From positions 1 through 64,000 of the IMG/VR virus record IMGVR_UViG_3300037502_002993: DNA of 64,000 bases, one strand, 5' to 3'. Position numbers and translations under genes: made by a program. Positions within the stretch are counted from its first letter, which is position 1; each line of letters starts with the position of its first letter. The notes under the pieces were generated by a model. That model worked only from the letters and a program-made list of their open reading frames with translations. It was not told the origin of the DNA and did not search any database. Of the stretch, positions 10,595 through 31,957 are shown piece after piece.

Positions 10595-12580
10595 TCATGT
10601 AGTTTTCACCCCTCCCATTAACATGACGTCATAGGGGTGGTCGGGTCGATTCTGGTTGAGGAATAGGCGGGGATGAGTCACGGCTGCTTGTTGCTTCTCC
10701 AAGGCCATCAACCCACCCAGACTGCGGTTCTCCATCAGTTCACTATAGCGTGCAAAGCGTCCTTTGATGGCGGGCTTTGGAAAGGTGTAATCTCCATTGT
10801 CCTTATCCCGGGCCGTCATGGCGAATAACAGCATTTCTGAATGGACCAGGTTCACATAGAGCTTCTCATTGATCAGCTGGTTGAAATGGATCAGCGCCTC
10901 TGTATGATTTCGATATTCAGTCAAGAACCGCTTGCCGTTGATGTTGGCCTGACTGCTCTTATCAAGCTTGATGCCCTTATCGTCACTTTTGGATTGGATA
11001 AAGGTACTGATGCGCTTCATCACCTCATGCATGTGAACGTGTTTCATCGGCATGACCAGGAAGGGTTTCTCCGGATCAAAGTCCGACATGTCGATCACAA
11101 TGTTACCACTGTCATCATGGGTCCAGCGTTTCTTCACCAGGTACTGCAGCATGGCATGGGAGAATGACGCCTTCCGATTGTGCAGCGAAACCGTTAGCAT
11201 ATCACGAATGGGTTCGTCGCAGTCTGCAATGCTAAAGAGGATCTGGGTGATCTGACTGGCACTGCGGATGGGATAGAGATTGATCTTTCTCACCATCAGG
11301 ATATCGGCAAGGTTCTTTGCCTCCGTGTGGTGAATGGTCATGATCAGCTTACGTCCCATCCACTTCTTCTTTAAGAAGATGACCTCATCCATTCCCCGAT
11401 ACTGCAGGTACTTACTTTCCACCTGACCCAGTTGGAACTTGTCCACCCCTCCAATGCTGTCTTGGTGCTTGGTCGACAGTACCGCTGAGGTGATCTTATC
11501 TCCGGTGTCTACCGCACTGACCTGACCGATATTGGTGTCTTTAGGGATACTAAAGGCAATCCGTCCGTAACAGGTAGAGCAGACCCCCTGGGGATCGGGA
11601 TGGGTACAGCCCAACACTGAGCGCAGCTGAATGGTCTGTCCGATTAGGTGGGTGTGGTCTTTGGTGATCCAATCCAACACCACACTGCCGTCCTCCTGCT
11701 TGGCGTAGTAATATTTCCCCACCAAGGTTTTGAACATCTCCCTCATCACCGGGAATTGGATGCTGTAGGAGGTACCACAGTCACCATGATGGAGGCGCTG
11801 GATATAGGCGGCCACCATCTGCAATTTCCGGTTGAAGTATTCGGTATCGCGAATCAACTCCTTGTTAAATGCCAAGGCCTTAGACCCACTGCGGGATTCA
11901 ATCAGATTCCCATAAAGCCCCGGTACGCCTTCGAGCAGTCCTCGGGTAATGGGCACACGGAAGATATCTGAGTTCACATCAGTTCGATCCCCTAAAGGAC
12001 CAAAGCACTGCAGGGCCTGCCCCATCTTGATGGTCCCGCTGCGCAGGGATTCTGCAATCGGGTTTCCAATCAAGTCATCTGAGGTCAGCAGGGTCTTTTT
12101 GATAACCTCATAGGTCTTGGCAATGCTTGCGGTGTTGGGCTGTACTGCCGCATTGGCCTTCTTGATGTCGGGGTGCTCCATAACCTGAAGGGCATCAATC
12201 AGCGACATGGTCGTGACGTAGCGCCCGAGGTTGGTGATGATGGCATTGTACAGGCGGTTATTGGTTTTAAATACCTGATGGGCCAGTGTCTCCGTATCGG
12301 CGGGCTCCCCCAACTGTTGGTGGATGTGCCAGGCGACTCGGTTCATCCGATCCAGAATGCTCCCTCCACTCAACCGCCCTTTCCCTAGGTGGAAGTCTTT
12401 AAGCAGAGACACCTCGGGATAGAAGGTGAGGGGGTACCAGAAGTACACGGAGATGATGGTGGCGCGGGTGTGGGTTTCGATCTCTCCGTCGTCAAAGACG
12501 ACAACATGACGCTCCTCGGGAAGGGCCCAAAGGGCCGCTTCCTCCATTGCCAGTAGGTCTCTTGCGGAGTACCGATTCAT
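10595..12580 (-). CDS. nvRNAP beta'-like C-terminal subunit (phiKZ gp74-like)
   Basis: Bridge-helix-like SRSGSKAL..TEYFNRKLQ, DCGT, Zn site RSVLGC..GVCSTCYG, LSTKH. Confidence 0.88.
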   Translation of the reverse strand: MNRYSARDLLAMEEAALWALPEERHVVVFDDGEIETHTRATIISVYFWYPLTFYPEVSLLKDFHLGKGRLSGGSILDRMNRVAWHIHQQLGEPADTETLAHQVFKTNNRLYNAIITNLGRYVTTMSLIDALQVMEHPDIKKANAAVQPNTASIAKTYEVIKKTLLTSDDLIGNPIAESLRSGTIKMGQALQCFGPLGDRTDVNSDIFRVPITRGLLEGVPGLYGNLIESRSGSKALAFNKELIRDTEYFNRKLQMVAAYIQRLHHGDCGTSYSIQFPVMREMFKTLVGKYYYAKQEDGSVVLDWITKDHTHLIGQTIQLRSVLGCTHPDPQGVCSTCYGRIAFSIPKDTNIGQVSAVDTGDKITSAVLSTKHQDSIGGVDKFQLGQVESKYLQYRGMDEVIFLKKKWMGRKLIMTIHHTEAKNLADILMVRKINLYPIRSASQITQILFSIADCDEPIRDMLTVSLHNRKASFSHAMLQYLVKKRWTHDDSGNIVIDMSDFDPEKPFLVMPMKHVHMHEVMKRISTFIQSKSDDKGIKLDKSSQANINGKRFLTEYRNHTEALIHFNQLINEKLYVNLVHSEMLLFAMTARDKDNGDYTFPKPAIKGRFARYSELMENRSLGGLMALEKQQAAVTHPRLFLNQNRPDHPYDVMLMGGVKTT

Positions 12581-13506
12581 TAGGGCGAATCCTGTTCTGG
12601 TTGGTAGTGAAACTTAATGCCGCGGCAGTTAAAGAAGTGCTGTGTGATCGCCACGGGCCGACTCCCGCCATAGGGGAACCGCTCCCGGTCAACAACGCGA
12701 TCAATGTTGGTGGGTTTTGGTGCCTCCAGGATATTCTGGGTGACATGCCGATGCACATCAGGGCTATTGCTCTGGTCAAGAAACTCCATGGTCACCTCTG
12801 GGGTGACATAGGCGTTATACGAGCGGGTTTCTGATTCCCCGAGGCCTCTCACGGACTGCTGCCGCCCTGGTGAGGTCGACCGATCATACTGGTTCAGTTT
12901 GGCGGGAATGCCAAAGTGTTGGAGCTTTACTGAGGCCACCCCACTCCAGTCCTCCGCGGTCTTCTCCAGCAGTAAGAACTGCATATTGCCAATCAACACC
13001 GGGTGTTCAGTGGTGACCATCTCCCCTCGCATGTCCCGATAGGTCACAGGACCGTAATGGGGCTTGAAGGGAGAGTTCTCTAATGCCAGTGCGGTCTGCA
13101 GGTAGTTATTGGGACTGTCTGACGGGATGTGTAGGAAGATCCCATCGCGCAGGATACATCTTACGTGTTCTGCGGGGTTGGGGTGTGCTTTGATGATGGG
13201 AACCATCAAGGGCGCTATGATACTGTAGAACTCAAGCAGGGTGTCGAATGTTCGGGTCACCCACCCACTGTCCTGCAGGGCGTTATTGAGTTCAACGTCG
13301 GTGGGTTTCATGTGAGAAGCAATCCCCACCTCGTTTCTCAGGCGTTGAGTGAGGTCATAGGCCGCTGCGTTAAAGTATTGGTCATAGAACCTTCCCATGT
13401 TGGTTCGGTTAAACGTCGATACGCCGTAGATCGCAACATCGGCTACCTTCCCCGTGCCATCCTTGGGCATGGCTTCATCGGGGTAAATACGACAGATGAC
13501 TCCTTT
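12580..13506 (-). CDS. nvRNAP beta-like C-terminal subunit, exon 2 (phiKZ gp73-like)
   Basis: KGVICRIYPDEAMP..DV, RTNMG, RGLGESE beta-subunit motifs; begins right after the intron-terminal G. Confidence 0.88.
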   Translation of the reverse strand, partial: KGVICRIYPDEAMPKDGTGKVADVAIYGVSTFNRTNMGRFYDQYFNAAAYDLTQRLRNEVGIASHMKPTDVELNNALQDSGWVTRTFDTLLEFYSIIAPLMVPIIKAHPNPAEHVRCILRDGIFLHIPSDSPNNYLQTALALENSPFKPHYGPVTYRDMRGEMVTTEHPVLIGNMQFLLLEKTAEDWSGVASVKLQHFGIPAKLNQYDRSTSPGRQQSVRGLGESETRSYNAYVTPEVTMEFLDQSNSPDVHRHVTQNILEAPKPTNIDRVVDRERFPYGGSRPVAITQHFFNCRGIKFHYQPEQDSP

Positions 13507-13916
13507 CGAGATCTTCAAGTGGGGTCGTTACGCCCACCCCGCGGTGTGTCTCCCTCACGGGAGTCATCCGCTGCTCCAGGCTTTCCCTGGATGCCGAGAC
13601 TATCTCTTGATCCTCTCCCAGATGGAGTAGGACCCTCCCCATTTCCCCGACCGATAACTTGCCGGGTACAGGCTGGTAAGACCTTAGTCGTTGAGCACAT
13701 CCCATATCCATCCGCAGGGAATGGACTTAGGGACTTCGCTGCGGATTACCCATTTCACTCCAGGGACTGGAGATCATCCTTACGCTTTTTACCGCACCCA
13801 AGTAGTTAGCTTGGACCCCGTGGGGTGTCTGACGACACCGGTCACTCTTTCGAGCACGAGTTGGTACGTAAGGCTTTAGTGGCTTCCCGCGATTAGAGGA
13901 GGTTCACTCAGGACTC

Positions 13917-14736
13917 TCATCCTGAGCGGGCCGTAGGTACGTAATAATGCAATCGGTATCCTTCCACAACGCGACATCTAGCGATTGCTTTGATGACGTC
14001 GTTTTTACTTCCAAGGGTATTGGAAAAGTGTTCAGCTGCTTTAGTGATATTGGTGAAGAACAACTCACCGCCTTCATTGTCAACAGCAATCACACCACGG
14101 GCACGGTTTTTGGGGTTATCTCTAAAGATGGCCAAATCCCGCTCGTTGAACTCCGGCCAGGGAGTGTCATCGCCCTCTTGACGAAACAGGTAGCCGTAGT
14201 AAGGCCTGTCCCATTTTTTCTTGATCTGATTAAGAAGTCCTCCAGGATACTCTAACCTTAAGTCTTCATTGACACTCCCCTTCTTTTAAGAAGGGGATTC
14301 TTGCTTCATTGAACTGACTTACCTTCGGTAAGGAAGGCAGTGGTCACTTTCTCCACAAGCGTTTAGTGAGTCCGTATGCCCTACGGCCTCTGCTAAAGTC
14401 ACACTCAATGGGCCAGCGATAGCGATACCCAATGTTTGATGGGTGGAGGTTATCCCAATTCCCATCGATGTGAAACGGTTCGACCTTCCACCAATGGTGA
14501 TAGCCTAGCCTTAACTTCCCAAACGCCGCCAGTACCAACAGAGCGACGGGGATTTCACTTATCACCCCTCCAGTGTTAACGCTAACTACCCACCCTAGCA
14601 TCTCATCAAAGCTAGGGGTTATTTCCACCCCGTTATGGAAAACCTGGCCGCTTTCCATAACCCTGACTTCCCCGGTAGTCAATGCCGGATCAATCAGTCC
14701 AAACCCTTGTTCGTTAGAAAGGTACTTTTCAAACAT
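13917..14736 (-). pseudogene. Intron-encoded HNH-type homing endonuclease, disrupted by a TnpB right-end insert
   Basis: N-terminal part 14409..14736 has HIDGNWDNLHPSNI; C-terminal part 13917..14267 is open for 116 codons with GYLF..PWP and a NUMOD1-like FTNITKAAEHF. Confidence 0.75.
14269..14408 (-). mobile_element. Stand-alone IS200/IS605 right end / TnpB omegaRNA, copy 1
   Basis: Near-identical to 50072..50212; ends GGGGAGTGTCAA on the minus strand; no tnpB and no left end. Confidence 0.88.
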
Positions 14737-14801
14737 TTCAACCTCCTAAACTCCTGCAATAGGAGGAAGAATATCGTTATGCATTAGTTACGGGTCGCTC
14801 C

Positions 14802-15992
14802 ACCATGCAAAAAATCCGTGAGCTTATAGCCCCCATCGACCATCATTGGCCAATCATAGGTGATCTCCACGCGCCACTCATCCAGGGTATCGAGCTTATG
14901 CATACGCGTAAGCTTGCGTTCATGGAGCGGTGTGGGGAGATAGATCAGGGCCTCTACGATCAGCTGTTGAAACTCAGGGGTGATACGCGGTGAGCCGCGA
15001 CGATCCCTCTTGAGCTGTTCATAGACCTTAAGGATGCGGCGATAGTACTCGCACTGGGCTTCGTAATACTTACGGGCTTGGCGATCCATTCCCGTGGGTG
15101 TTGGACTTGGGTTAACGCGCTCGTCATGGTAGACCTTCACATCCACAATGCGCGCGCCGGCCCGCGCCCACAGCACGCGATCAAAATCGTGCTGAATCTC
15201 ACGCAGTGCCCTTGGCGTCATATCGGCAATCCCAAGAACGGGATCGCGATCTCGGGTCGCCATGACAACCCCATCAGGGCCGATGATATCGCCGATATCG
15301 GGAAACGCCTTGTAGGTGTTAGCATCACCATGGACATTGAGCGGAAATGACTTCTTACCGAAGCTTCCGACAATGGTCTGATAGCGGTGAGCGGTGAGTT
15401 TCTTCAGAAACCCCTCGCGGACCAGAAACCCATCCTCGATGGTACTGGGCAGTGAGAAGAAACAGACCTGGGCTTCGGTACCAATACCGTAGCTCCCATC
15501 ATCCATCTTGGCAATGCTGTCAGCCAGTGACTCCCCTTTCTCGAAGTTGGCACCAGGGGCAAGTCGCTCCAAAGCACGGGAGTTGGGCCTTAGCGGGTAA
15601 CCAAACTCCGTGTGTAATGCCTCGTATTTCTTAAGGCGCAAGATCCCGACGGTTTTATAAGGGTCATCGAAATCCTCATAAACGATCAGGGTTTCGGGGT
15701 TTTCACGAATGCTATCCTCCCCTACCCCTGGCGTATAGCGACGGATCACATCCCTTACCGTGGCGTTACAAGGAAAGGTTGCACCAAAGGTCTCTCTGCC
15801 GTACTTGATCTCCTGACCAGTTTGGATTTTTCTTGGCTCCACACCTTCCACCACCAGGGCTTGCCCTAGCTGGGTCGCGCCCATGGCCTTACGCGCAGCG
15901 GTGTTATTGCGAAAGAAGGGGTCGAGTGCTCCCGTACCCAGTAGTGTGGCTTTGAGTTCACGGGCTTCTTCAGTGGGATTAGGGTTGATCAT
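14802..15992 (-). CDS. nvRNAP beta-like subunit, exon 1 (phiKZ gp71-like)
   Basis: R..M..QLGQA, TIEDG and terminal GYKLTDFLHG motifs. Confidence 0.88.
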
Positions 15993-26169: not shown

Positions 26170-26781
26170 TTACAGCATGTTGCCGTACAGACTGGTGGGG
26201 TCTTCGCCCCCCTCTTCGAGGATATGTCGTACACGGGCCCAACTGTCCAGGACATCGAGCTTCTCGAAGCTGGTGAGTTCCCGTTCTCCCTCAGGGAGGT
26301 AGTCCTGGTAACGCTTCAGGATGTAGTCATCTCCTTCCAGCCGCCCAACGCCATCCATAACACGACGCCAGTCATACTGGGCTTCGCCCACAGCGTTCCC
26401 TTGGAGGTTTTTATAGCTATCGGAATAACCGTCCACCTCTTGATGGAGATATTTGCGCCTCAGGGTTTCCTCCGCCATCACCCATCGCTGCATGGTTAGA
26501 GATGCGGTTTGGAATTGGGCCATGTCATAAAGGGCTTGGATCTGATTAGACACCCAGAGACTGTCCAACTTGCTCTTGGCGTTTCTCAGCATCTGCATGG
26601 CTTGGGATTCTGAGATGGTCTGGTGAATCTGTTTGGCTTGCGAAAAGAACTGCTGCGCGCGTTCACCAAGGGCACTATAGAACCCATCACCACGCTGCGC
26701 AATCCAGTCCTTTGTCTGTTCATCCACCATTCCACCCCCAAGCGCATCGATGAGATCGTTGCCGTAATTGAGGGCCTGCAT
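26170..26781 (-). CDS. Conserved core protein downstream of the beta' gene
   Basis: AAGGAG RBS; MQRWVMA..DGYSDSY..DPTS motifs. Confidence 0.75.
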   Translation of the reverse strand: MQALNYGNDLIDALGGGMVDEQTKDWIAQRGDGFYSALGERAQQFFSQAKQIHQTISESQAMQMLRNAKSKLDSLWVSNQIQALYDMAQFQTASLTMQRWVMAEETLRRKYLHQEVDGYSDSYKNLQGNAVGEAQYDWRRVMDGVGRLEGDDYILKRYQDYLPEGERELTSFEKLDVLDSWARVRHILEEGGEDPTSLYGNML

Positions 26782-26806
26782 TAATGGAACACTCCTTTAC
26801 GTTGGG

Positions 26807-26992
26807 TTACCCACGACCATTGAGGTAGTCAGCGTGTATCCAGTTGGCCGCCATGTCCACCACAGGACCTTGAAGGGCTAACTTACCTGTAATCTCGTGG
26901 GGCTTACTGACATCCCAACACCACAGGTGAGGGGCCAGCCTTGAGGTCTTCTCAGTTGCCCAGTTATCCAGATTCAGGATTAAAATCAGTGC
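26807..26992 (-). CDS. nvRNAP beta' N-subunit, exon 4 (phiKZ gp56.1-like)
   Basis: ALILILNLD..RLAPHLW..PHEITGKLALQGPVV follows DFDGD after splicing. Confidence 0.88.
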   Translation of the reverse strand, partial: ALILILNLDNWATEKTSRLAPHLWCWDVSKPHEITGKLALQGPVVDMAANWIHADYLNGRG

Positions 26993-27436
26993 CAAATGTC
27001 TTCAGTGTGGTTCGTTAGGCCACACCCGCCACCTCCCCGCCTCACGGCGGTAAGGCGCTGCTCTGGGCGTTACCCAGACTGTTGAGATCATCTCTTATTC
27101 CACTTCCTGTGGAATCCTCCCGTTTTGACCCCACTTGGGGCCTACGCTACTCATCACTGTGATCCATTCCTTGGCAGTGCTTTCGCTGACCGTTGAGCCC
27201 ACTCCTTATCAATTAAGACTTAGGAGCTTCGCTGCGTGATTGGACAATCTCCACCGTTATTACCGACTGGCGTGTTTGTAACGCCAGGAGCGGCTAGTAG
27301 CCGCCCGTACCCAGTTAATTAGACTGGCCGCTAGTTTGTTTCCAGAACTAGTTTGGTAGATGGAGCTCTAAGCCCGTCCCCGCAATTAGAGAGGTTGTTT
27401 AGCTGTATGTTACCATACAGGGTGACATCACTGTTT
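26993..27436 (-). ncRNA. Group I intron 3 of the beta' gene (444 nt, no ORF)
   Basis: Exon GGUGAU pairs with internal guide GUCACC with a U-G at the splice site; AATTGCGGGGA and AATCACGCAGC core elements; ends GAAGACATTTG. Confidence 0.88.
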
Positions 27437-27448
27437 ATCACCATCAAA
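27437..27448 (-). CDS. 12-nt micro-exon 3 encoding FDGD
   Basis: TTT GAT GGT GAT lies between an intron-terminal G and the next 5' splice site. Confidence 0.88.
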
Positions 27449-27929
27449 CAAATATCTTCGACTGGAGTCGTTAATTCCAGCCCGTCTTCCCTGGGACTAC
27501 TGCACCAGGAGACAGCTTCAGGATTTCCCTGAATGATTGAGACCATATCTTCCACTGTGTCTAAACACAGCAGCCTCCCGTTTCGATTTAAAGGACTTAC
27601 GTCTAGTGCCATTCCACACTAGCGGCCTACCCAAACACTTGGCTCTACTCTACTCACTTTAATCTCCGTAGAGACCAGCGCACTTTACAGCGCTGTCACT
27701 CCGCTTGCTTTGAGCAAGCCGCAGCTTTCGATGGTCGTTGAACACATGCCGTAGTTCCTAGTGTAGAAACCTTAGGCACTTCGTTGCGCTGATTCTGCCT
27801 GTTCAACACGTTTTTACCAAGCCACCCACTTCCATTACTGGGGGTGGTATTGTAGTGGGTTTCCCCCTACAAGTGGTAGTGTTGACATACAGCAAGTTCC
27901 CGCAGTTAGAGAGGTAAGGACCTTGATCG
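27449..27929 (-). ncRNA. Group I intron 2 of the beta' gene (481 nt)
   Basis: Exon GGAU pairs with GUCC; AACTGCGGGAA and AAGATATGGTC core elements; ends GAAGATATTTG. Confidence 0.88.
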
Positions 27930-27935
27930 ATCCGC
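27930..27935 (-). CDS. 6-nt micro-exon 2 encoding AD
   Basis: GCG GAT directly after the intron end GAAGGCACCG. Confidence 0.85.
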
Positions 27936-28402
27936 CGGTGCCTTCAGTAGGGGGCGTTACTCCCTACCCGCTACCCTTCTGTCTCTCGACAGTAAGGCGC
28001 TGCTCCAGGTTTTCCCTGGATGCCGAGACTATATCTTCACCCGCCAGCTTTAGACTGGGTAGGGTGTCTTCCGTTTCCCCGCCCGATCACTTGGCAGGTA
28101 CAGGGGCCCGAATCCCTTAGTCGTTGGGCACATCCCATATCCCTGTAAAAGGAACTTAGGGACTTCGCTGCGTGATTCCCCATTTTGCCTTATCTAGCGC
28201 ATCCTCGTCTCTTTTACTGTACCGCTGTGGTTAGCAGCGCCCCTGTGGGGTGTCTGACGACACCGGTCACTCTTTCGAGCACAGGTTAGTGTACGAGGCT
28301 TTAGTGGGTTCCCGTCAATTAGGAAGAACACCGCCCAGAACTTTCATCCTGGGGGAACATTAGGAAAGTTTCTCCAATCGAGGTATTTTAACTTTCCTGT
28401 CT
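27936..28402 (-). ncRNA. Group I intron 1 of the beta' gene (467 nt)
   Basis: AATTGACGGGAA, AATCACGCAGC, GACTAAG and AAGATATAGTC core elements; starts after CCC AAT; its P1 pairing is not obvious by eye. Confidence 0.85.
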
Positions 28403-29650
28403 ATTGGGGGCTTTCAAAACTAGCGCAGAAAGTCCAATGGTGTTATCAGCCACATTGGACTTAAACTTGGTAATGAAGAATTGCTGGGTACTCCCTCGTT
28501 GAAGTGTTGGATTCCTGGAGAAGATACAACTGATGCCTTTTCCTGGTGCCTCATCTACCAGTTCTTTCAGTAATGCCTCCATCATGGGGTTGAATGAGGA
28601 CACACTGCGGTAGACAAAGTCCATGGCTTGTGTGCTGGTCATGCCACGCTTAAGCAGCTTATTGACCAGGTGGTACTTAAACAACTGAATACCCAACCCC
28701 CACGGCAGGTGCAGTTCATCGTAGTCATGGGGGTCGGTAATACTGGTGATAACAGCTCGTGCTGTGTAATGCAGGCGAGAACCGAAGACATGCTTACGCA
28801 GAACCCCACTCTTTGAGGCCATGCGGTCCTTCATGAAACTGTGGTAGTACTGACACAGTGACTTGATGGACGAAGAGACCCGATTCTCCACATCCGCCTG
28901 CCGGAGTGGGACCACGCTACTACTGGCACTGGCCATAGTCAATACCGCGTCTTTAGCTGCGTTCAGTGGGTTGTCCACATAGCGGCCCGAGTTGGTACTC
29001 TCCATGACGAAACATACCCGATTGGGCACCATCAGGTATTTCGGAAAGAACAGATGTCGGTAGGTATCGATCCACGTCATAAACTCATGGCGTTCTTTGA
29101 CGTTGTTGCCGAACATTTTCTCGCTAGCAAAGAACTCAATGTGTTTATCAAAGTCCTCCACAAAGGCTTTAAACCCCCGTCTCGGGTTATACGCCAGAAA
29201 CCGATCCAGTCGTTTTCTGGTTTCCTTCCCCATGGGTTTTTCCATATCAAACCGATATTTGGTATTGATCAGATACTCAAGGAAATCCACATGGCCTGTC
29301 TTGAGTTTGGGCTCAAGGATCAGGTACATCTCCGGGTGCATAAGAGCCGGTACCCCTTCCGGGGCCTGTAGCCAGAGCACACTCTTAATGGCTTGGGTGG
29401 TGGTGGATTCCACTGGGGTTTTACACACACTACACACAATGCCGATCTCATCCACACGGGTGTGCTTCTGACAATGGCACGTAGCTCCGAACTCGATGGT
29501 ATCGGTGTGATCGTAATGGGTGATGAGGTGCTTGTCCAATAACTCCTTTTGTTCCGGAATGGAGATGTCAAACTTGTTGGCGATGAGGGGATCAAACGTT
29601 AGACGCGCAAACTCCTCATCATAGTTGACCATTGTAGCAACAATGCCCAT
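28403..29650 (-). CDS. nvRNAP beta' N-terminal subunit, exon 1 (phiKZ gp55-like)
   Basis: Zn-finger CHC..CSVC, KSGVLRKHVFGSR, ARAVITS, RNPTL; ends LKAPN just before ADFDGD. Confidence 0.92.
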
Positions 29651-29756: not shown

Positions 29757-31736
29757 TCAGTAGTAACGACCGGAACCCGCCACGTTGCCCTGATAGACAT
29801 GCCCGCGGTTCTGGTTCACCGTGGAACCGCCCTGGTGAATGTGTGCCTGACCGTCCACCGCGAACTGACTCATGAACTGGTTGCCGGCGAAGCGCTGGTT
29901 GCCACCCAGGACCTGAGAGATGTTCTCCAGCTCGACCTGCAAACCAGCACCAGCAGTGGCATCGTCCAGTGCCTTGATGAAACCAGGCGTCAGCGCCAGA
30001 CGCGCAGCACGACCAGTCACCTCCACACGAGAGCCCGCGTACTGACGGGTCAGCTTCTCCAGGCGATCCAGGCGCATGGCAGCCGGCATGGTGCCGAAGC
30101 CGCCCGGGTTGTTGCCGCAGAAGATCGCGTACCACTCATCGAACGCCACCTGGTCGCCCTTGGTGATGTTGAGCATCGCCAGCACGTCCAGTTCACGCAG
30201 ATCGCGGATCTGACCCTGATCATCCACCCAGCGACCCAGCAGGATCTCCTGGTTGGTGTGACGTACCAGTGGATCGCCCTCAGCAATGGCCTGGGAGAAA
30301 CGACCACTGGTCAGGTTATCAGCCGCGGCAATCAGACGCTTGCGTGCCTGGTTCTGGTACTTGCCAGGGGTGGCAGCGTCCAGCAGGAAGGTTTCGAAGG
30401 CGGAGTTCTCACTCATCGGCTGTACGTCGATGAGAAACGCCGGCATCGCTTCCATGGCATGACGAACGAACTCCAGGAAGTTCTGATCGGAGTAGTTCTT
30501 GGCCTTCAGGTCCACGTACTGGAACTCGGAGAAGGGCATCTTGTAGCCCAGTGCACCGATATCCTTCCAGTCCACCCCTTTCACACCCAGGCGCGGCTTG
30601 AGGGCTTCCAGCCAGGCGTAGTTGTAGGTCAGGCGGAATGCGTTGGACAGACCCAGCATGTAGAACTCACCCGTCTGGGACTGGATGTGCGGGGCCGGGC
30701 AGTTATTGGTGATGACCACAGTGGGCATGAAGGGTTGGGTCACCTGCTGCTGATTGGGAGAACCCCAACCGCCCTGCGGCTGACCACCGATGACACGACC
30801 GCCAGTGAACTCCACCCCAACGAAGCAGGACAGTTCATTGAGGGCGGTGTTCTCCTCGTAGAACTCATCCTCGTCCTTGGTATCCCCTTCGACCTGAGCG
30901 CCCATCCGCACAATCACGTCAGAGCGGATCGGATTGCCGACAATGTCGAACTTCGGCTCAGCAGTGAAGTCGAAAGAGGCTACGAAGCGGGTGTTGCTCG
31001 CTGCCTGACCGTTTTCGTTGATCGGCTTGAGGTCTTCGATACGGAAGGGCACTTCCCCAGCGAAGATCTGGATGCCATCGTCCACCCGGTTGACGGAATC
31101 GATCAGCAGGCGCTTGACCTCCACGGACTCCAGCTTGAAGTCGAAGTGACGTGGCACCAGAATGGGACCTGCGTCGATCGCGGTGACGTCACGACCTTCC
31201 GGCTGAATGCCCAGTTGGTTGAAGACGGTGTTGACCACCTTGGCCCAGTACTTCTCAGTGTAGACGTCCTGGCTGAAGGTTGTGACCTCGATCTGGGTCT
31301 GACCCACCCACTCCTTGCGCTTGCGCAGGGGGCGATCGGAATCCAGCATCACAACGCGGATGGCCACGGCGGTCTTCTGAGCGACCTGAGCGACCTTCAC
31401 CACCAGGATGGAACTACGACCCACACGGTGGGTTTCGGAGTCGAAGCGGATCAGGTGGAAGTCGTCGGGCATGCGCTGCATTTCGACTTCGGTTTTGTAG
31501 GCATCACGGATGGCGGTGAAGGCCTGGGAGGTGCGCTCTTCGCCACCGTCCATCTGACCGGAACGACGGAACACGGTGTTGATGTCACGGGGGTCGTTCA
31601 GGCCCCGTGCGGCGGGTTTGGGCGCTGCAGCACCCACATTACCGCCATAGCCAGTCGGACCACGACCCGTCGGCTGCGGTTGTGCCTTGGGCTGCTCGGG
31701 CTGGTTCTGGTTGCTTTCGTTATCGCGGATACCCAT
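29757..31736 (-). CDS. chmA: Chimallin, major nuclear shell protein (phiKZ gp54-like)
   Basis: 659 aa from MGIRDNE; directly upstream of the gp55-like gene; strong codon bias; disordered N-terminus; GNPIRSD, DIGALG, RDLRELD motifs. Confidence 0.85.
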   Translation of the reverse strand: MGIRDNESNQNQPEQPKAQPQPTGRGPTGYGGNVGAAAPKPAARGLNDPRDINTVFRRSGQMDGGEERTSQAFTAIRDAYKTEVEMQRMPDDFHLIRFDSETHRVGRSSILVVKVAQVAQKTAVAIRVVMLDSDRPLRKRKEWVGQTQIEVTTFSQDVYTEKYWAKVVNTVFNQLGIQPEGRDVTAIDAGPILVPRHFDFKLESVEVKRLLIDSVNRVDDGIQIFAGEVPFRIEDLKPINENGQAASNTRFVASFDFTAEPKFDIVGNPIRSDVIVRMGAQVEGDTKDEDEFYEENTALNELSCFVGVEFTGGRVIGGQPQGGWGSPNQQQVTQPFMPTVVITNNCPAPHIQSQTGEFYMLGLSNAFRLTYNYAWLEALKPRLGVKGVDWKDIGALGYKMPFSEFQYVDLKAKNYSDQNFLEFVRHAMEAMPAFLIDVQPMSENSAFETFLLDAATPGKYQNQARKRLIAAADNLTSGRFSQAIAEGDPLVRHTNQEILLGRWVDDQGQIRDLRELDVLAMLNITKGDQVAFDEWYAIFCGNNPGGFGTMPAAMRLDRLEKLTRQYAGSRVEVTGRAARLALTPGFIKALDDATAGAGLQVELENISQVLGGNQRFAGNQFMSQFAVDGQAHIHQGGSTVNQNRGHVYQGNVAGSGRYY

Positions 31737-31957
31737 GAGGGCTTTCTCCTTGCGTTTTATTGCAGTCGACTGCAATGCTGTCCAGTTAACTGGACGGCTC
31801 TTGCCTGTGAATGATGTGGGTTTCAAATCTGTTCGGATAAACCCACACCAGAATCCTTGCGTTACGACATACCGCTTAATGGCCTAGAAGGCCCGTGAGA
31901 CTGTCAGGTGACAATCCCCTATAAGATAACATTCCCAGTATTTTTCTACATGGGCAT

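Follow-up and report, generated by a model that had tools for sequence, protein, structure and literature searches.

A giant nucleus-forming phage carries three group I introns packed into 18 bases of its RNA polymerase catalytic motif, NADFDGD, so that all three catalytic aspartate codons are located in exons of only 6 and 12 bases. These micro-exons are shorter than the shortest natural phage or bacterial exons between group I introns named in the papers that we read, which measure 23 nt (Twort) and 34 nt (Coxiella). The analysed window is a 64,000-nt stretch of the IMG/VR record IMGVR_UViG_3300037502_002993, and the gene is located on its minus strand. An earlier note had claimed, from the sequence alone, that three tandem group I introns without endonuclease ORFs split this motif into two micro-exons, and our check confirmed every sequence statement that it made. 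In the absence of RNA evidence splicing in vivo remains an inference, but we consider the reading of a gene restored by three separate splicing events to be well supported (probability about 0.85). The locus is composed of the following features, with a hyphen in the site names marking the insertion point:

28403 to 29650, minus strand: exon 1 of the gp55-type RNAP beta-prime (N-terminal) subunit gene, 416 codons ending LKAPN; its last bases are GTTTTGAAAGCCCCCAAT, with the T at 28403
27936 to 28402, minus strand: intron 1, group I, 467 nt, at the N-A site, with a terminal G at 27936
28374 to 28378, minus strand: candidate internal guide of intron 1, AUUGG, pairing with exon CCAAU and giving U-A, not U-G, at the cleavage site
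27930 to 27935, minus strand: micro-exon A, GCGGAT (Ala-Asp), 6 nt, followed by CGATCAAGG
27449 to 27929, minus strand: intron 2, group I, 481 nt, at the AD-F site, with a terminal G at 27449
27918 to 27927, minus strand: guide of intron 2, 5'-AUCAAG-GUCC-3'; AUCAAG pairs with UUUGAU of micro-exon B (P10, 6 bp) and GUCC with GGAU of micro-exon A (P1, U-G at the splice site)
27437 to 27448, minus strand: micro-exon B, TTTGATGGTGAT (Phe-Asp-Gly-Asp), 12 nt
26993 to 27436, minus strand: intron 3, group I, 444 nt, at the FDGD-A site, with a terminal G at 26993
27421 to 27433, minus strand: guide of intron 3, 5'-CAGUG-AU-GUCACC-3'; CAGUG pairs with CACUG of exon 4 (P10) and GUCACC with GGUGAU (P1, U-G at the splice site)
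26807 to 26992, minus strand: exon 4, 61 codons plus stop (ALILILNLDN...YLNGRG), starting with GCACTGATT

The identity of the gene is clear. Exon 1 matches positions 1-416 of the PHROG profile phrog_2987 (E 4e-131) and exon 4 matches positions 424-476 (E 5e-08) as well as phrog_35368, and the gap that remains between both matches is the one that ADFDGD fills. Exon 1 is 46.8% identical to PhiPA3 gp54 and, in a tblastn comparison, 44% identical to phiKZ gp55, and the equivalent in Noxifer is annotated as non-virion RNAP beta-prime. Chimallin (PF25677, E 3e-129) is located immediately upstream at 29757-31826, and the gene is that of the N-terminal beta-prime-like subunit of the non-virion RNAP of a nucleus-forming jumbo phage (chimallivirus). 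The conceptual mRNA of 1452 nt contains a single ORF of 483 aa that aligns without gaps to five uninterrupted homologues, with 45-54% identity (47.5% to PhiPA3 gp54), and NADFDGD is restored only after joining the four exons. The gene is under constraint, since a 98.8%-identical strain from another sample, which shares the junction of exon 1 and intron 1, differs at 18 exon-1 positions with 16 silent and only 2 conservative residue changes. A megablast search of the locus against the phage collection found nothing, and the phage has no close cultured relative. The closest relative of exon 1 (P0002, 80% identical; P and L numbers are our labels for relatives) and several others lie on contigs that end before or inside the motif introns, so that no near-isogenic empty site could be shown.

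The three intervals contain group I cores, and the observation as a whole is far beyond chance. Each intron ends with a hairpin whose loop is NNUAACGNN, followed by YGAAG-N5/6-G. The Rfam model RF00028 passes only intron 1 (65.5 bits, gathering score 50); intron 3 obtained a sub-threshold 21.8 bits (E 0.008 in a local search) and intron 2 gave no hit, even at permissive thresholds on 26700-28500. Because a MAFFT alignment of the three full introns was poor in the 5' halves, we modelled the 3' module only and established a covariance model (R1) that was trained on seven other introns, excluding introns 2 and 3. Within the whole window this model hits only four places, namely, intron 1 (179 bits), intron 2 (86.7 bits, E 5e-27), intron 3 (83.5 bits, E 6e-26) and a fourth intron at 13507-13755. 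The helices P3, P4, P6, P7, P8 and P9 could be written out for each of the three introns. The P7 of intron 2 (GACCA/UGGUC) is compensatory relative to intron 1, and intron 3 exhibits a P7 of GGUCA/UGAUC and a P2 of CUGUAUG/CAUACAG. On 26 related introns 92.9% of the cells are paired and 33 of 39 pairs show compensatory changes, compared with 33-40% paired cells in the slid controls; P7, P8, P9 and P9.2 covary. A twintron can be rejected, because each R1 hit covers the full model within its own interval and the intervening 6 and 12 nt are coding and required by the ORF.

The guides of introns 2 and 3 pair with both flanking exons, and their P1 helices (GGAU/GUCC and GGUGAU/GUCACC), each with a U-G at the splice site, are also the minimum-free-energy folds, although the P1 of intron 2 comprises only 4 exon base pairs. 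P10 is 6 bp for intron 2, 5 bp for intron 3 and at most 3 bp (CGG/UCG) for intron 1. The best guide of intron 1, AUUGG, gives U-A instead of the near-universal U-G, a 3-bp alternative (GUU) would give U-G, and the minimum-free-energy fold does not form the AUUGG helix but prefers a competing hairpin, GGAAAGUU/AACUUUCC, so that its P1 could not be settled. The P1 of the paralogous beta-gene intron is also unclear. The candidate guide is located at the place homologous to that of the phiKZ-type introns (UCGUUGGG versus UCGAUUGG), and Bobae, a cultured and viable phiKZ-like phage, has the same G-to-A state at the same site. The earlier note had rightly claimed a U-G P1 only for introns 2 and 3. 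The 30-nt spliced junction is absent from metagenome contigs, but this collection is mainly DNA and the absence says little.

None of the three introns carries an endonuclease gene. The largest ORFs inside them are 93, 65, 48 and 45 aa, without any Pfam or PHROG endonuclease hit, and the 93-aa ORF, which spans intron 2, the micro-exon and intron 3, is not on record on any other contig. In contrast, the paralogous intron at 13507-14801 holds an HNH-like ORF (phrog_959, E 0.0013). The introns are not recent duplicates. Introns 2 and 3 are 61-67% identical to every other intron in conserved columns, while the nearest relative of intron 1 is the intron in the RNAP beta gene of the same genome.

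Interestingly, each of the three sites is occupied singly in relatives. An intron at the N-A site is present in phiKZ, L014, Bobae, L312 and L314, the AD-F site is occupied in L013, L098, L099, L104, L105 and L107, and ORFs break at the FDGD-A site in P0019, P0034 and P0083. The earlier note had placed the phiKZ intron near this motif, and it is located at exactly the site of intron 1. Stacks of two introns are present in other metagenomic phages, namely, in L256 with a 12-nt FDGD micro-exon (NAD-FDGD-AMN) and in L108 and L121 with a 9-nt YDG micro-exon (NAD-YDG-DQLN), whereas three introns were seen only here.

The best explanation is that three ORF-less group I introns interrupt the gene in phase 0, after the Asn codon, after Ala-Asp and after Phe-Asp-Gly-Asp. 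Under this reading the pre-mRNA must undergo three separate two-step guanosine-initiated splicing reactions, each directed by the internal guide of the respective intron, which together ligate exon 1, GCGGAU, UUUGAUGGUGAU and exon 4. The earlier note had inferred that splicing may be ordered because the 6-nt exon must serve both P10 of intron 1 and P1 of intron 2. The short P10 of intron 1 does overlap the P1 nucleotides of intron 2, but the clearer dual use is found in the 12-nt exon, which consists exactly of the P10 half of intron 2 (UUUGAU) and the P1 half of intron 3 (GGUGAU). We infer that the micro-exons are consumed by guide pairings and that neighbouring introns therefore cannot adopt their catalytic conformations at the same time, so that the three reactions probably run one after another rather than concurrently. 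The introns are most simply explained as relics of three independent invasions of a homing hot spot that later lost their endonuclease genes.

An alternative, which we consider rather unlikely, is that the stack is maintained by selection as an armour, because the conserved NADFDGD-coding DNA no longer exists as a contiguous target for homing endonucleases brought in by co-infecting chimalliviruses; the loss of such target sites had also been proposed in the earlier note and is plausible, but it remains an inference. The motif is a heavily used hot spot with five break classes within or at its end (after N, NA, NAD, NADFDG and NADFDGD) among 88 family proteins, plus a possible sixth just upstream (after AP) and another in the upstream RNPTLQRG motif, several of them with HNH ORFs. 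Moreover, an intron-encoded HNH nuclease of PhiPA3 is known to damage the RNAP gene of co-infecting phiKZ (PMC11620839), and stacks recur in three lineages. However, a single intron already disrupts a target that spans its own site, ORF-less introns are the expected neutral end state of the homing cycle, and stacks are rare, with three lineages among dozens of occupied genes. A more speculative and rather unlikely scenario regards the stack as a functional unit. Every nucleotide of the 12-nt exon and most of the 6-nt exon is claimed by a guide of one intron or its neighbour, and the three ribozymes would therefore have to fire in a set order, making the synthesis of the catalytic subunit conditional on three successive RNA-folding checkpoints inside the phage nucleus. 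The stack would at the same time erase the DNA target of every homing endonuclease aimed at NADFDGD, and any mis-splice would give an in-frame subunit without catalytic aspartates that could act as a brake on transcription.

It is improbable that the locus is decaying, with at least one intron, most likely intron 1, no longer splicing efficiently and the gene being a pseudogene or producing mostly dead or exon-skipped protein. The U-A splice site, the weak P10 and the alternative hairpin of intron 1 would be in agreement with this view, as would the phase-0 position of all introns, which leaves any exon-skipped product in frame, and exon skipping between phage group I introns has been shown for Twort orf142 and SIOphi (PMC10136302, PMC11878797). 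But all core helices are intact in all three introns, the ORF is intact across the four exons, the exon-1 differences between the two strains are silent or conservative, the viable phage Bobae shares the U-A state, and no other D[FY]DGD-coding sequence exists in the window. An assembly chimera of three single-intron strain variants is very unlikely, even though contigs of relatives often break inside these introns (L008-L010, L013, L106, L290), whose cores thus do act as repeats that confuse assemblers, because the joins would need k-mers spanning an intron end, a 6- or 12-nt exon and the next intron start that exist in no single-intron variant, because the guides of introns 2 and 3 are complementary to the very micro-exons that flank them, and because independent contigs from other samples show the same kind of stack (L256; L108 and L121 from two samples).

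Group I introns at catalytic codons of phage polymerases and mini-exons in fungal mitochondria are already known, but in the papers that we read we found no report of a phage gene whose whole catalytic triad is located in exons of 6 and 12 nt between three ribozymes. A close equivalent is the intron of phiKZ gene 55 with gp56, including its ORF-less or degenerate versions in Bobae-type phages, L008 and L014, which shares the gene next to chimallin, the insertion point after the Asn codon, the UAACG-loop hairpin and the tail ending in G. The phiKZ gene has a single intron here, which carries an HNH endonuclease gene, and Bobae has a second intron 126 nt upstream in RNPTLQRG; neither has micro-exons, and ADFDGD is contiguous in both. 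Staphylococcus phage Twort orf142 also contains three self-splicing group I introns and a very short internal exon (Landthaler and Shub 1999, as described in PMC10136302), thus raising the same question of how neighbouring ribozymes choose splice sites. However, its shortest exon is 23 nt, it encodes a structural protein rather than a catalytic motif, and Twort introns 2 and 3 are highly similar, whereas the three introns investigated here are only about 63-65% alike. Exons of a few nucleotides between complete autocatalytic group I/II introns at conserved coding positions are known from organelles, including a 3-nt exon in Podospora, 1-nt exons and 12-15-bp exons in Armillaria cob/cox1 (PMC8971849, PMC6506933, PMC12308204), but these occur in mitochondrial genomes, while the present case is a phage with ORF-less introns that presumably self-splice. 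The PhiPA3 gp210 intron interrupts a virion-RNAP beta subunit gene right next to catalytic aspartates (Birkholz et al. 2024, PMC11620839), but it is a single intron with an active HNH nuclease in a different subunit and motif.

The present stack is a natural test of how short an exon can be and still serve as P10 for one ribozyme and P1 for the next, and it bears on how exon skipping is avoided when every skipped product would be in frame but catalytically dead. The use of NADFDGD as an intron hot spot with recurrent stacking fits the emerging picture of intron-endonuclease conflict between co-infecting nucleus-forming phages, in which transcription is separated from translation, so that ribosomes cannot assist intron folding as they do in T4. 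Remarkably, the two-intron stack of L256 uses exactly the sites of introns 2 and 3, but neither L256 nor L108/L121 has the 6-nt AD micro-exon, and their introns are not close relatives of introns 2 or 3.

On the minus strand, the ORF at 29650-28388 encodes 416 residues ending LKAPN and then runs into a stop, and a second reading frame from 26992 to 26807 reads ALILILNLDN...YLNGRG*. The PHROG family phrog_2987 ("RNA polymerase beta subunit") matches the first piece to profile positions 1-416 of 478 (E 4e-131) and the second piece to positions 424-476, and the gap between them is what ADFDGD plus the first residue of exon 4 would fill. The best cultured relatives are PhiPA3 gp54, which is 46.8% identical and uninterrupted (...LKAPNADFDGDQLNLTLMPDN...), and phiKZ gp55; the homologue of Noxifer is annotated as non-virion RNAP beta-prime. 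The gene is located directly downstream of a chimallin gene (PF25677, E 3e-129, 29757-31826), as it is in all relatives that were retrieved. The window is part of the IMG/VR contig UViG_3300037502_002993 with a size of 220.6 kb, which represents a nucleus-forming jumbo phage. The organization of the locus is as follows:

29650-28388, minus strand: ORF of the first coding piece, 416 residues ending LKAPN, then a stop
28402-27936, minus strand: intron 1 (I1), 467 nt
27935-27930, minus strand: micro-exon GCGGAT, 6 nt
27929-27449, minus strand: intron 2 (I2), 481 nt
27448-27437, minus strand: micro-exon TTTGATGGTGAT, 12 nt
27436-26993, minus strand: intron 3 (I3), 444 nt
26992-26807, minus strand: exon 4, ALILILNLDN...YLNGRG*

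Each of the three long intervals ends in G. Joining the four coding pieces gives 1452 nt with one ORF of 483 residues, which aligns without any gap through ...LKAPNADFDGDALILILNLDN... to five uninterrupted homologues at 45-54% identity. All three introns are in phase 0, and the three Asp codons of NADFDGD are located in the two micro-exons. After NADFDGD the window phage has ALI (codon 3 of exon 4, 26984-26986), whereas 16 aligned homologues have an invariant Asn (QLN, AMN and the like); an Asn appears four residues later instead (ALILILN versus QLNLILI).

The Rfam model RF00028 passes intron 1 (65.5 bits, gathering score 50) and a fourth intron at 13574-13948 (73.8 bits), while in a local permissive search intron 3 reached 21.8 bits (E 0.008) and intron 2 gave no hit. 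We therefore aligned the 3' modules (P4' to the terminal G) of seven introns that pass Rfam, namely, I1, the intron at 13.5 kb, the phiKZ intron, two introns from Bobae, and those of L014 and L011, two contigs of related phages. RNAalifold recovered P6, P7, P8, P9 and a terminal hairpin with many compensatory pairs, and the covariance model R1 was built from this alignment without introns 2 and 3. In the whole window R1 finds exactly four places, which are the two training members plus intron 2 (27802-27450, 86.7 bits, E 5e-27) and intron 3 (27249-26994, 83.5 bits, E 6e-26), both as full-length matches. Among 26 introns from 18 sources aligned to the model, 92.9% of the cells are standard pairs and 33 of 39 pairs show changes on both sides, while controls with the 3' partner slid by 1-3 columns give 33-40% pairing. 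Within the window itself P7 covaries (GACUA/UAGUC in I1, GACCA/UGGUC in I2 and GGUCA/UGAUC in I3), as do P3, P8, P9 and the UAACG-loop hairpin. The core motifs AAUC..GCAGC and AAGAKAURRUCU occur only at these four places in the window.

Intron 2 begins with CGAUCAAGGUCC. Its GUCC pairs with GGAU of the 6-nt exon, with U-G at the cleavage site, and the adjacent AUCAAG pairs with UUUGAU, the first six bases of the 12-nt exon; the ligated junction GGAU-UUUGAU is therefore complementary to ten consecutive guide bases. Intron 3 begins with AAACAGUGAUGUCACC. Its GUCACC pairs with GGUGAU, the last six bases of the 12-nt exon, again with U-G, and CAGUG pairs with CACUG at +2 to +6 of exon 4. Both P1 helices are also the minimum-free-energy folds. 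Remarkably, the 12-nt exon is thus exactly one P10 half plus one P1 half. Intron 1 is weaker. Its best guide is AUUGG (28378-28374), which pairs with CCAAU and is located at the place homologous to UCGUUGGG of the phiKZ-type introns, but it puts A, not G, opposite the splice-site U. Its P10 is at most CGG/UCG and overlaps the P1 bases of intron 2, and a competing hairpin is favoured energetically. However, the cultured phage Bobae has the same G-to-A state at the same site, and this state is thus probably tolerated, but it remains the main structural caveat. Interestingly, phiKZ-type introns (L002:3760-3800 and L008:6250-6285) contain an internal CCCCCAAU that pairs perfectly with their own guide GUUGGG, better than the real exon CCUAAU does. 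In phiKZ this sequence is the end of the HNH ORF, and it may be a P1 mimic that competes with the 5' splice site.

Our comparison with related phages showed that phiKZ, L014 and Bobae have one intron exactly after the Asn codon (AAT, an intron ending in G, then GCNGAT TTY GAC GGC GAT). The C-termini of 88 family proteins document where ORFs leave homology, namely, after RN of RNPTLQRG, after AP, after N (6 proteins), after NA, after NAD (at least 13 proteins), after NADFDG (5 proteins) and after NADFDGD (3 proteins). Several of these positions are confirmed by DNA: the site after NAD in the contigs L013, L098, L099, L104, L105 and L107, and the site after NADFDG in L011. In the contig L109 (5234-5668) a single intron is inserted in phase 1 inside the Tyr codon of NADYDGD (GGACT, an intron ending CCG, then ATGACGGGGAT), one base downstream of the common site after AD. 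All three sites used in the window are therefore occupied singly elsewhere.

Two further stacks of tandem introns were found. One example is the metagenome contig L256 (2383-3020), which represents a second phage and reads ...AATGCTGAT, a 335-nt intron, TTCGATGGCGAT, a 291-nt intron and GCAATGAAT..., that is NAD-FDGD-AMN. The two group I introns flank a 12-nt FDGD micro-exon at the same two sites as introns 2 and 3 of the window, they are scored 160.7 and 117.5 bits by R1, and no intron is present at the site between N and A. Another example is a third lineage, represented by the contig L108 (5237-5987) and by L121 from a sister sample (JGI samples 3300018411 and 3300018412), which reads ...AATGCGGAT, 404 nt, TACGACGGT, 338 nt and GACCAGCTC, that is NAD-YDG-DQLN with the 9-nt micro-exon TACGACGGT (YDG). 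The R1 scores are 113 and 57 bits, and the second intron has a GACGGU/GCCGUC P1. In the pattern scans, only the window has an AD micro-exon and only the window has three introns.

A contig from another sample, 3300018411 (L290), which represents a 98.8%-identical strain of the window phage, covers 29751-28308. All 18 differences fall in exon 1 and only two of them change a residue (I/V, T/A). The first 95 nt of intron 1 are identical, and the contig stops where the conserved core begins. No other D[FY]DGD-coding stretch exists in the window. A chimeric assembly would need k-mers spanning intron, micro-exon and next intron, which no single-intron variant has, and the guides also match the flanking micro-exons. 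Contigs of several relatives (L008-L010, L013, L106, L290) end within about 100-350 nt after exon 1, inside the intron core. The conserved intron sequences thus seem to act as assembly-breaking repeats, and intron stacks are probably under-sampled in metagenome assemblies.

The three introns are 63-65% identical over their shorter length and 61-67% identical to everything else in conserved columns, and they are not recent tandem duplicates. The nearest relative of intron 1 (79% over 441 nt, with a 45-nt identical block) is the fourth group I intron, which splits an RNAP beta-subunit gene (phrog_3295) of the same genome at 12580-15992 on the minus strand:

15992-14802, minus strand: exon 1, ending ...FLHG
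about 14801-13507, minus strand: fourth group I intron
14736-14344: HNH-like ORF within the intron (phrog_959, E 0.0013)
14135-13917: possible C-terminal fragment
from 13506, minus strand: exon 2, starting KGVICRIYPDE

The flanking exon sequences are unrelated to those of intron 1, which suggests ectopic spread within the genome; the P1 of this intron could not be assigned. None of the three motif introns has an ORF longer than 93 aa or any endonuclease match. The simplest history is three separate invasions of a homing hot spot followed by loss of the endonuclease genes, and possible routes for the entry of a second and third intron next to an occupied site are nickases that recognise one exon only, or reverse splicing.

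Splicing itself, its order and any benefit are inferred. The guide pairings use up the micro-exons, and the terminal G of one intron is located 2-6 nt from the P1 of the next intron. We therefore expect neighbouring introns to be unable to dock at the same time, so that splicing should be sequential, although no data fix the order. Because all introns are in phase 0, every exon-skipped product would be an in-frame subunit without catalytic aspartates, and the strong P10 helices of introns 2 and 3 may be what prevents this.

The presence of group I introns in the phiKZ genes 56, 72 and 179 was already predicted in 2002 (cited in PMC10914365), and a PhiPA3 intron nuclease that attacks the RNAP gene of phiKZ has been described (PMC11620839) and reviewed (PMC12908238). 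Twort orf142 has three introns and a 23-nt exon with exon skipping, and the Coxiella 23S rRNA has a 34-nt exon (PMC10136302), while phiNIT1 has a small exon between two introns (PMC11878797). Fungal mitochondrial genes have mini-exons down to 3 nt or 1 nt and 12-15-bp exons (PMC8971849, PMC6506933, PMC12308204). What is new in the present case is the combination of a phage, three ribozymes, and 6- and 12-nt exons that carry a whole catalytic triad.

Interestingly, a different RNAP large-subunit family (...[FY]DGD[TM].S...YLNSK.AYL.P.GG; contigs L096, L103, L117, L147, L151, L154 and L224) also carries a group I intron with the same tail type, ending immediately before its [FY]DGD. Based on loci that were found by the 3'-tail pattern only, without their upstream exons, the same kind of site thus seems to be hit in a second, different polymerase large-subunit family, possibly the virion polymerase of jumbo phages.
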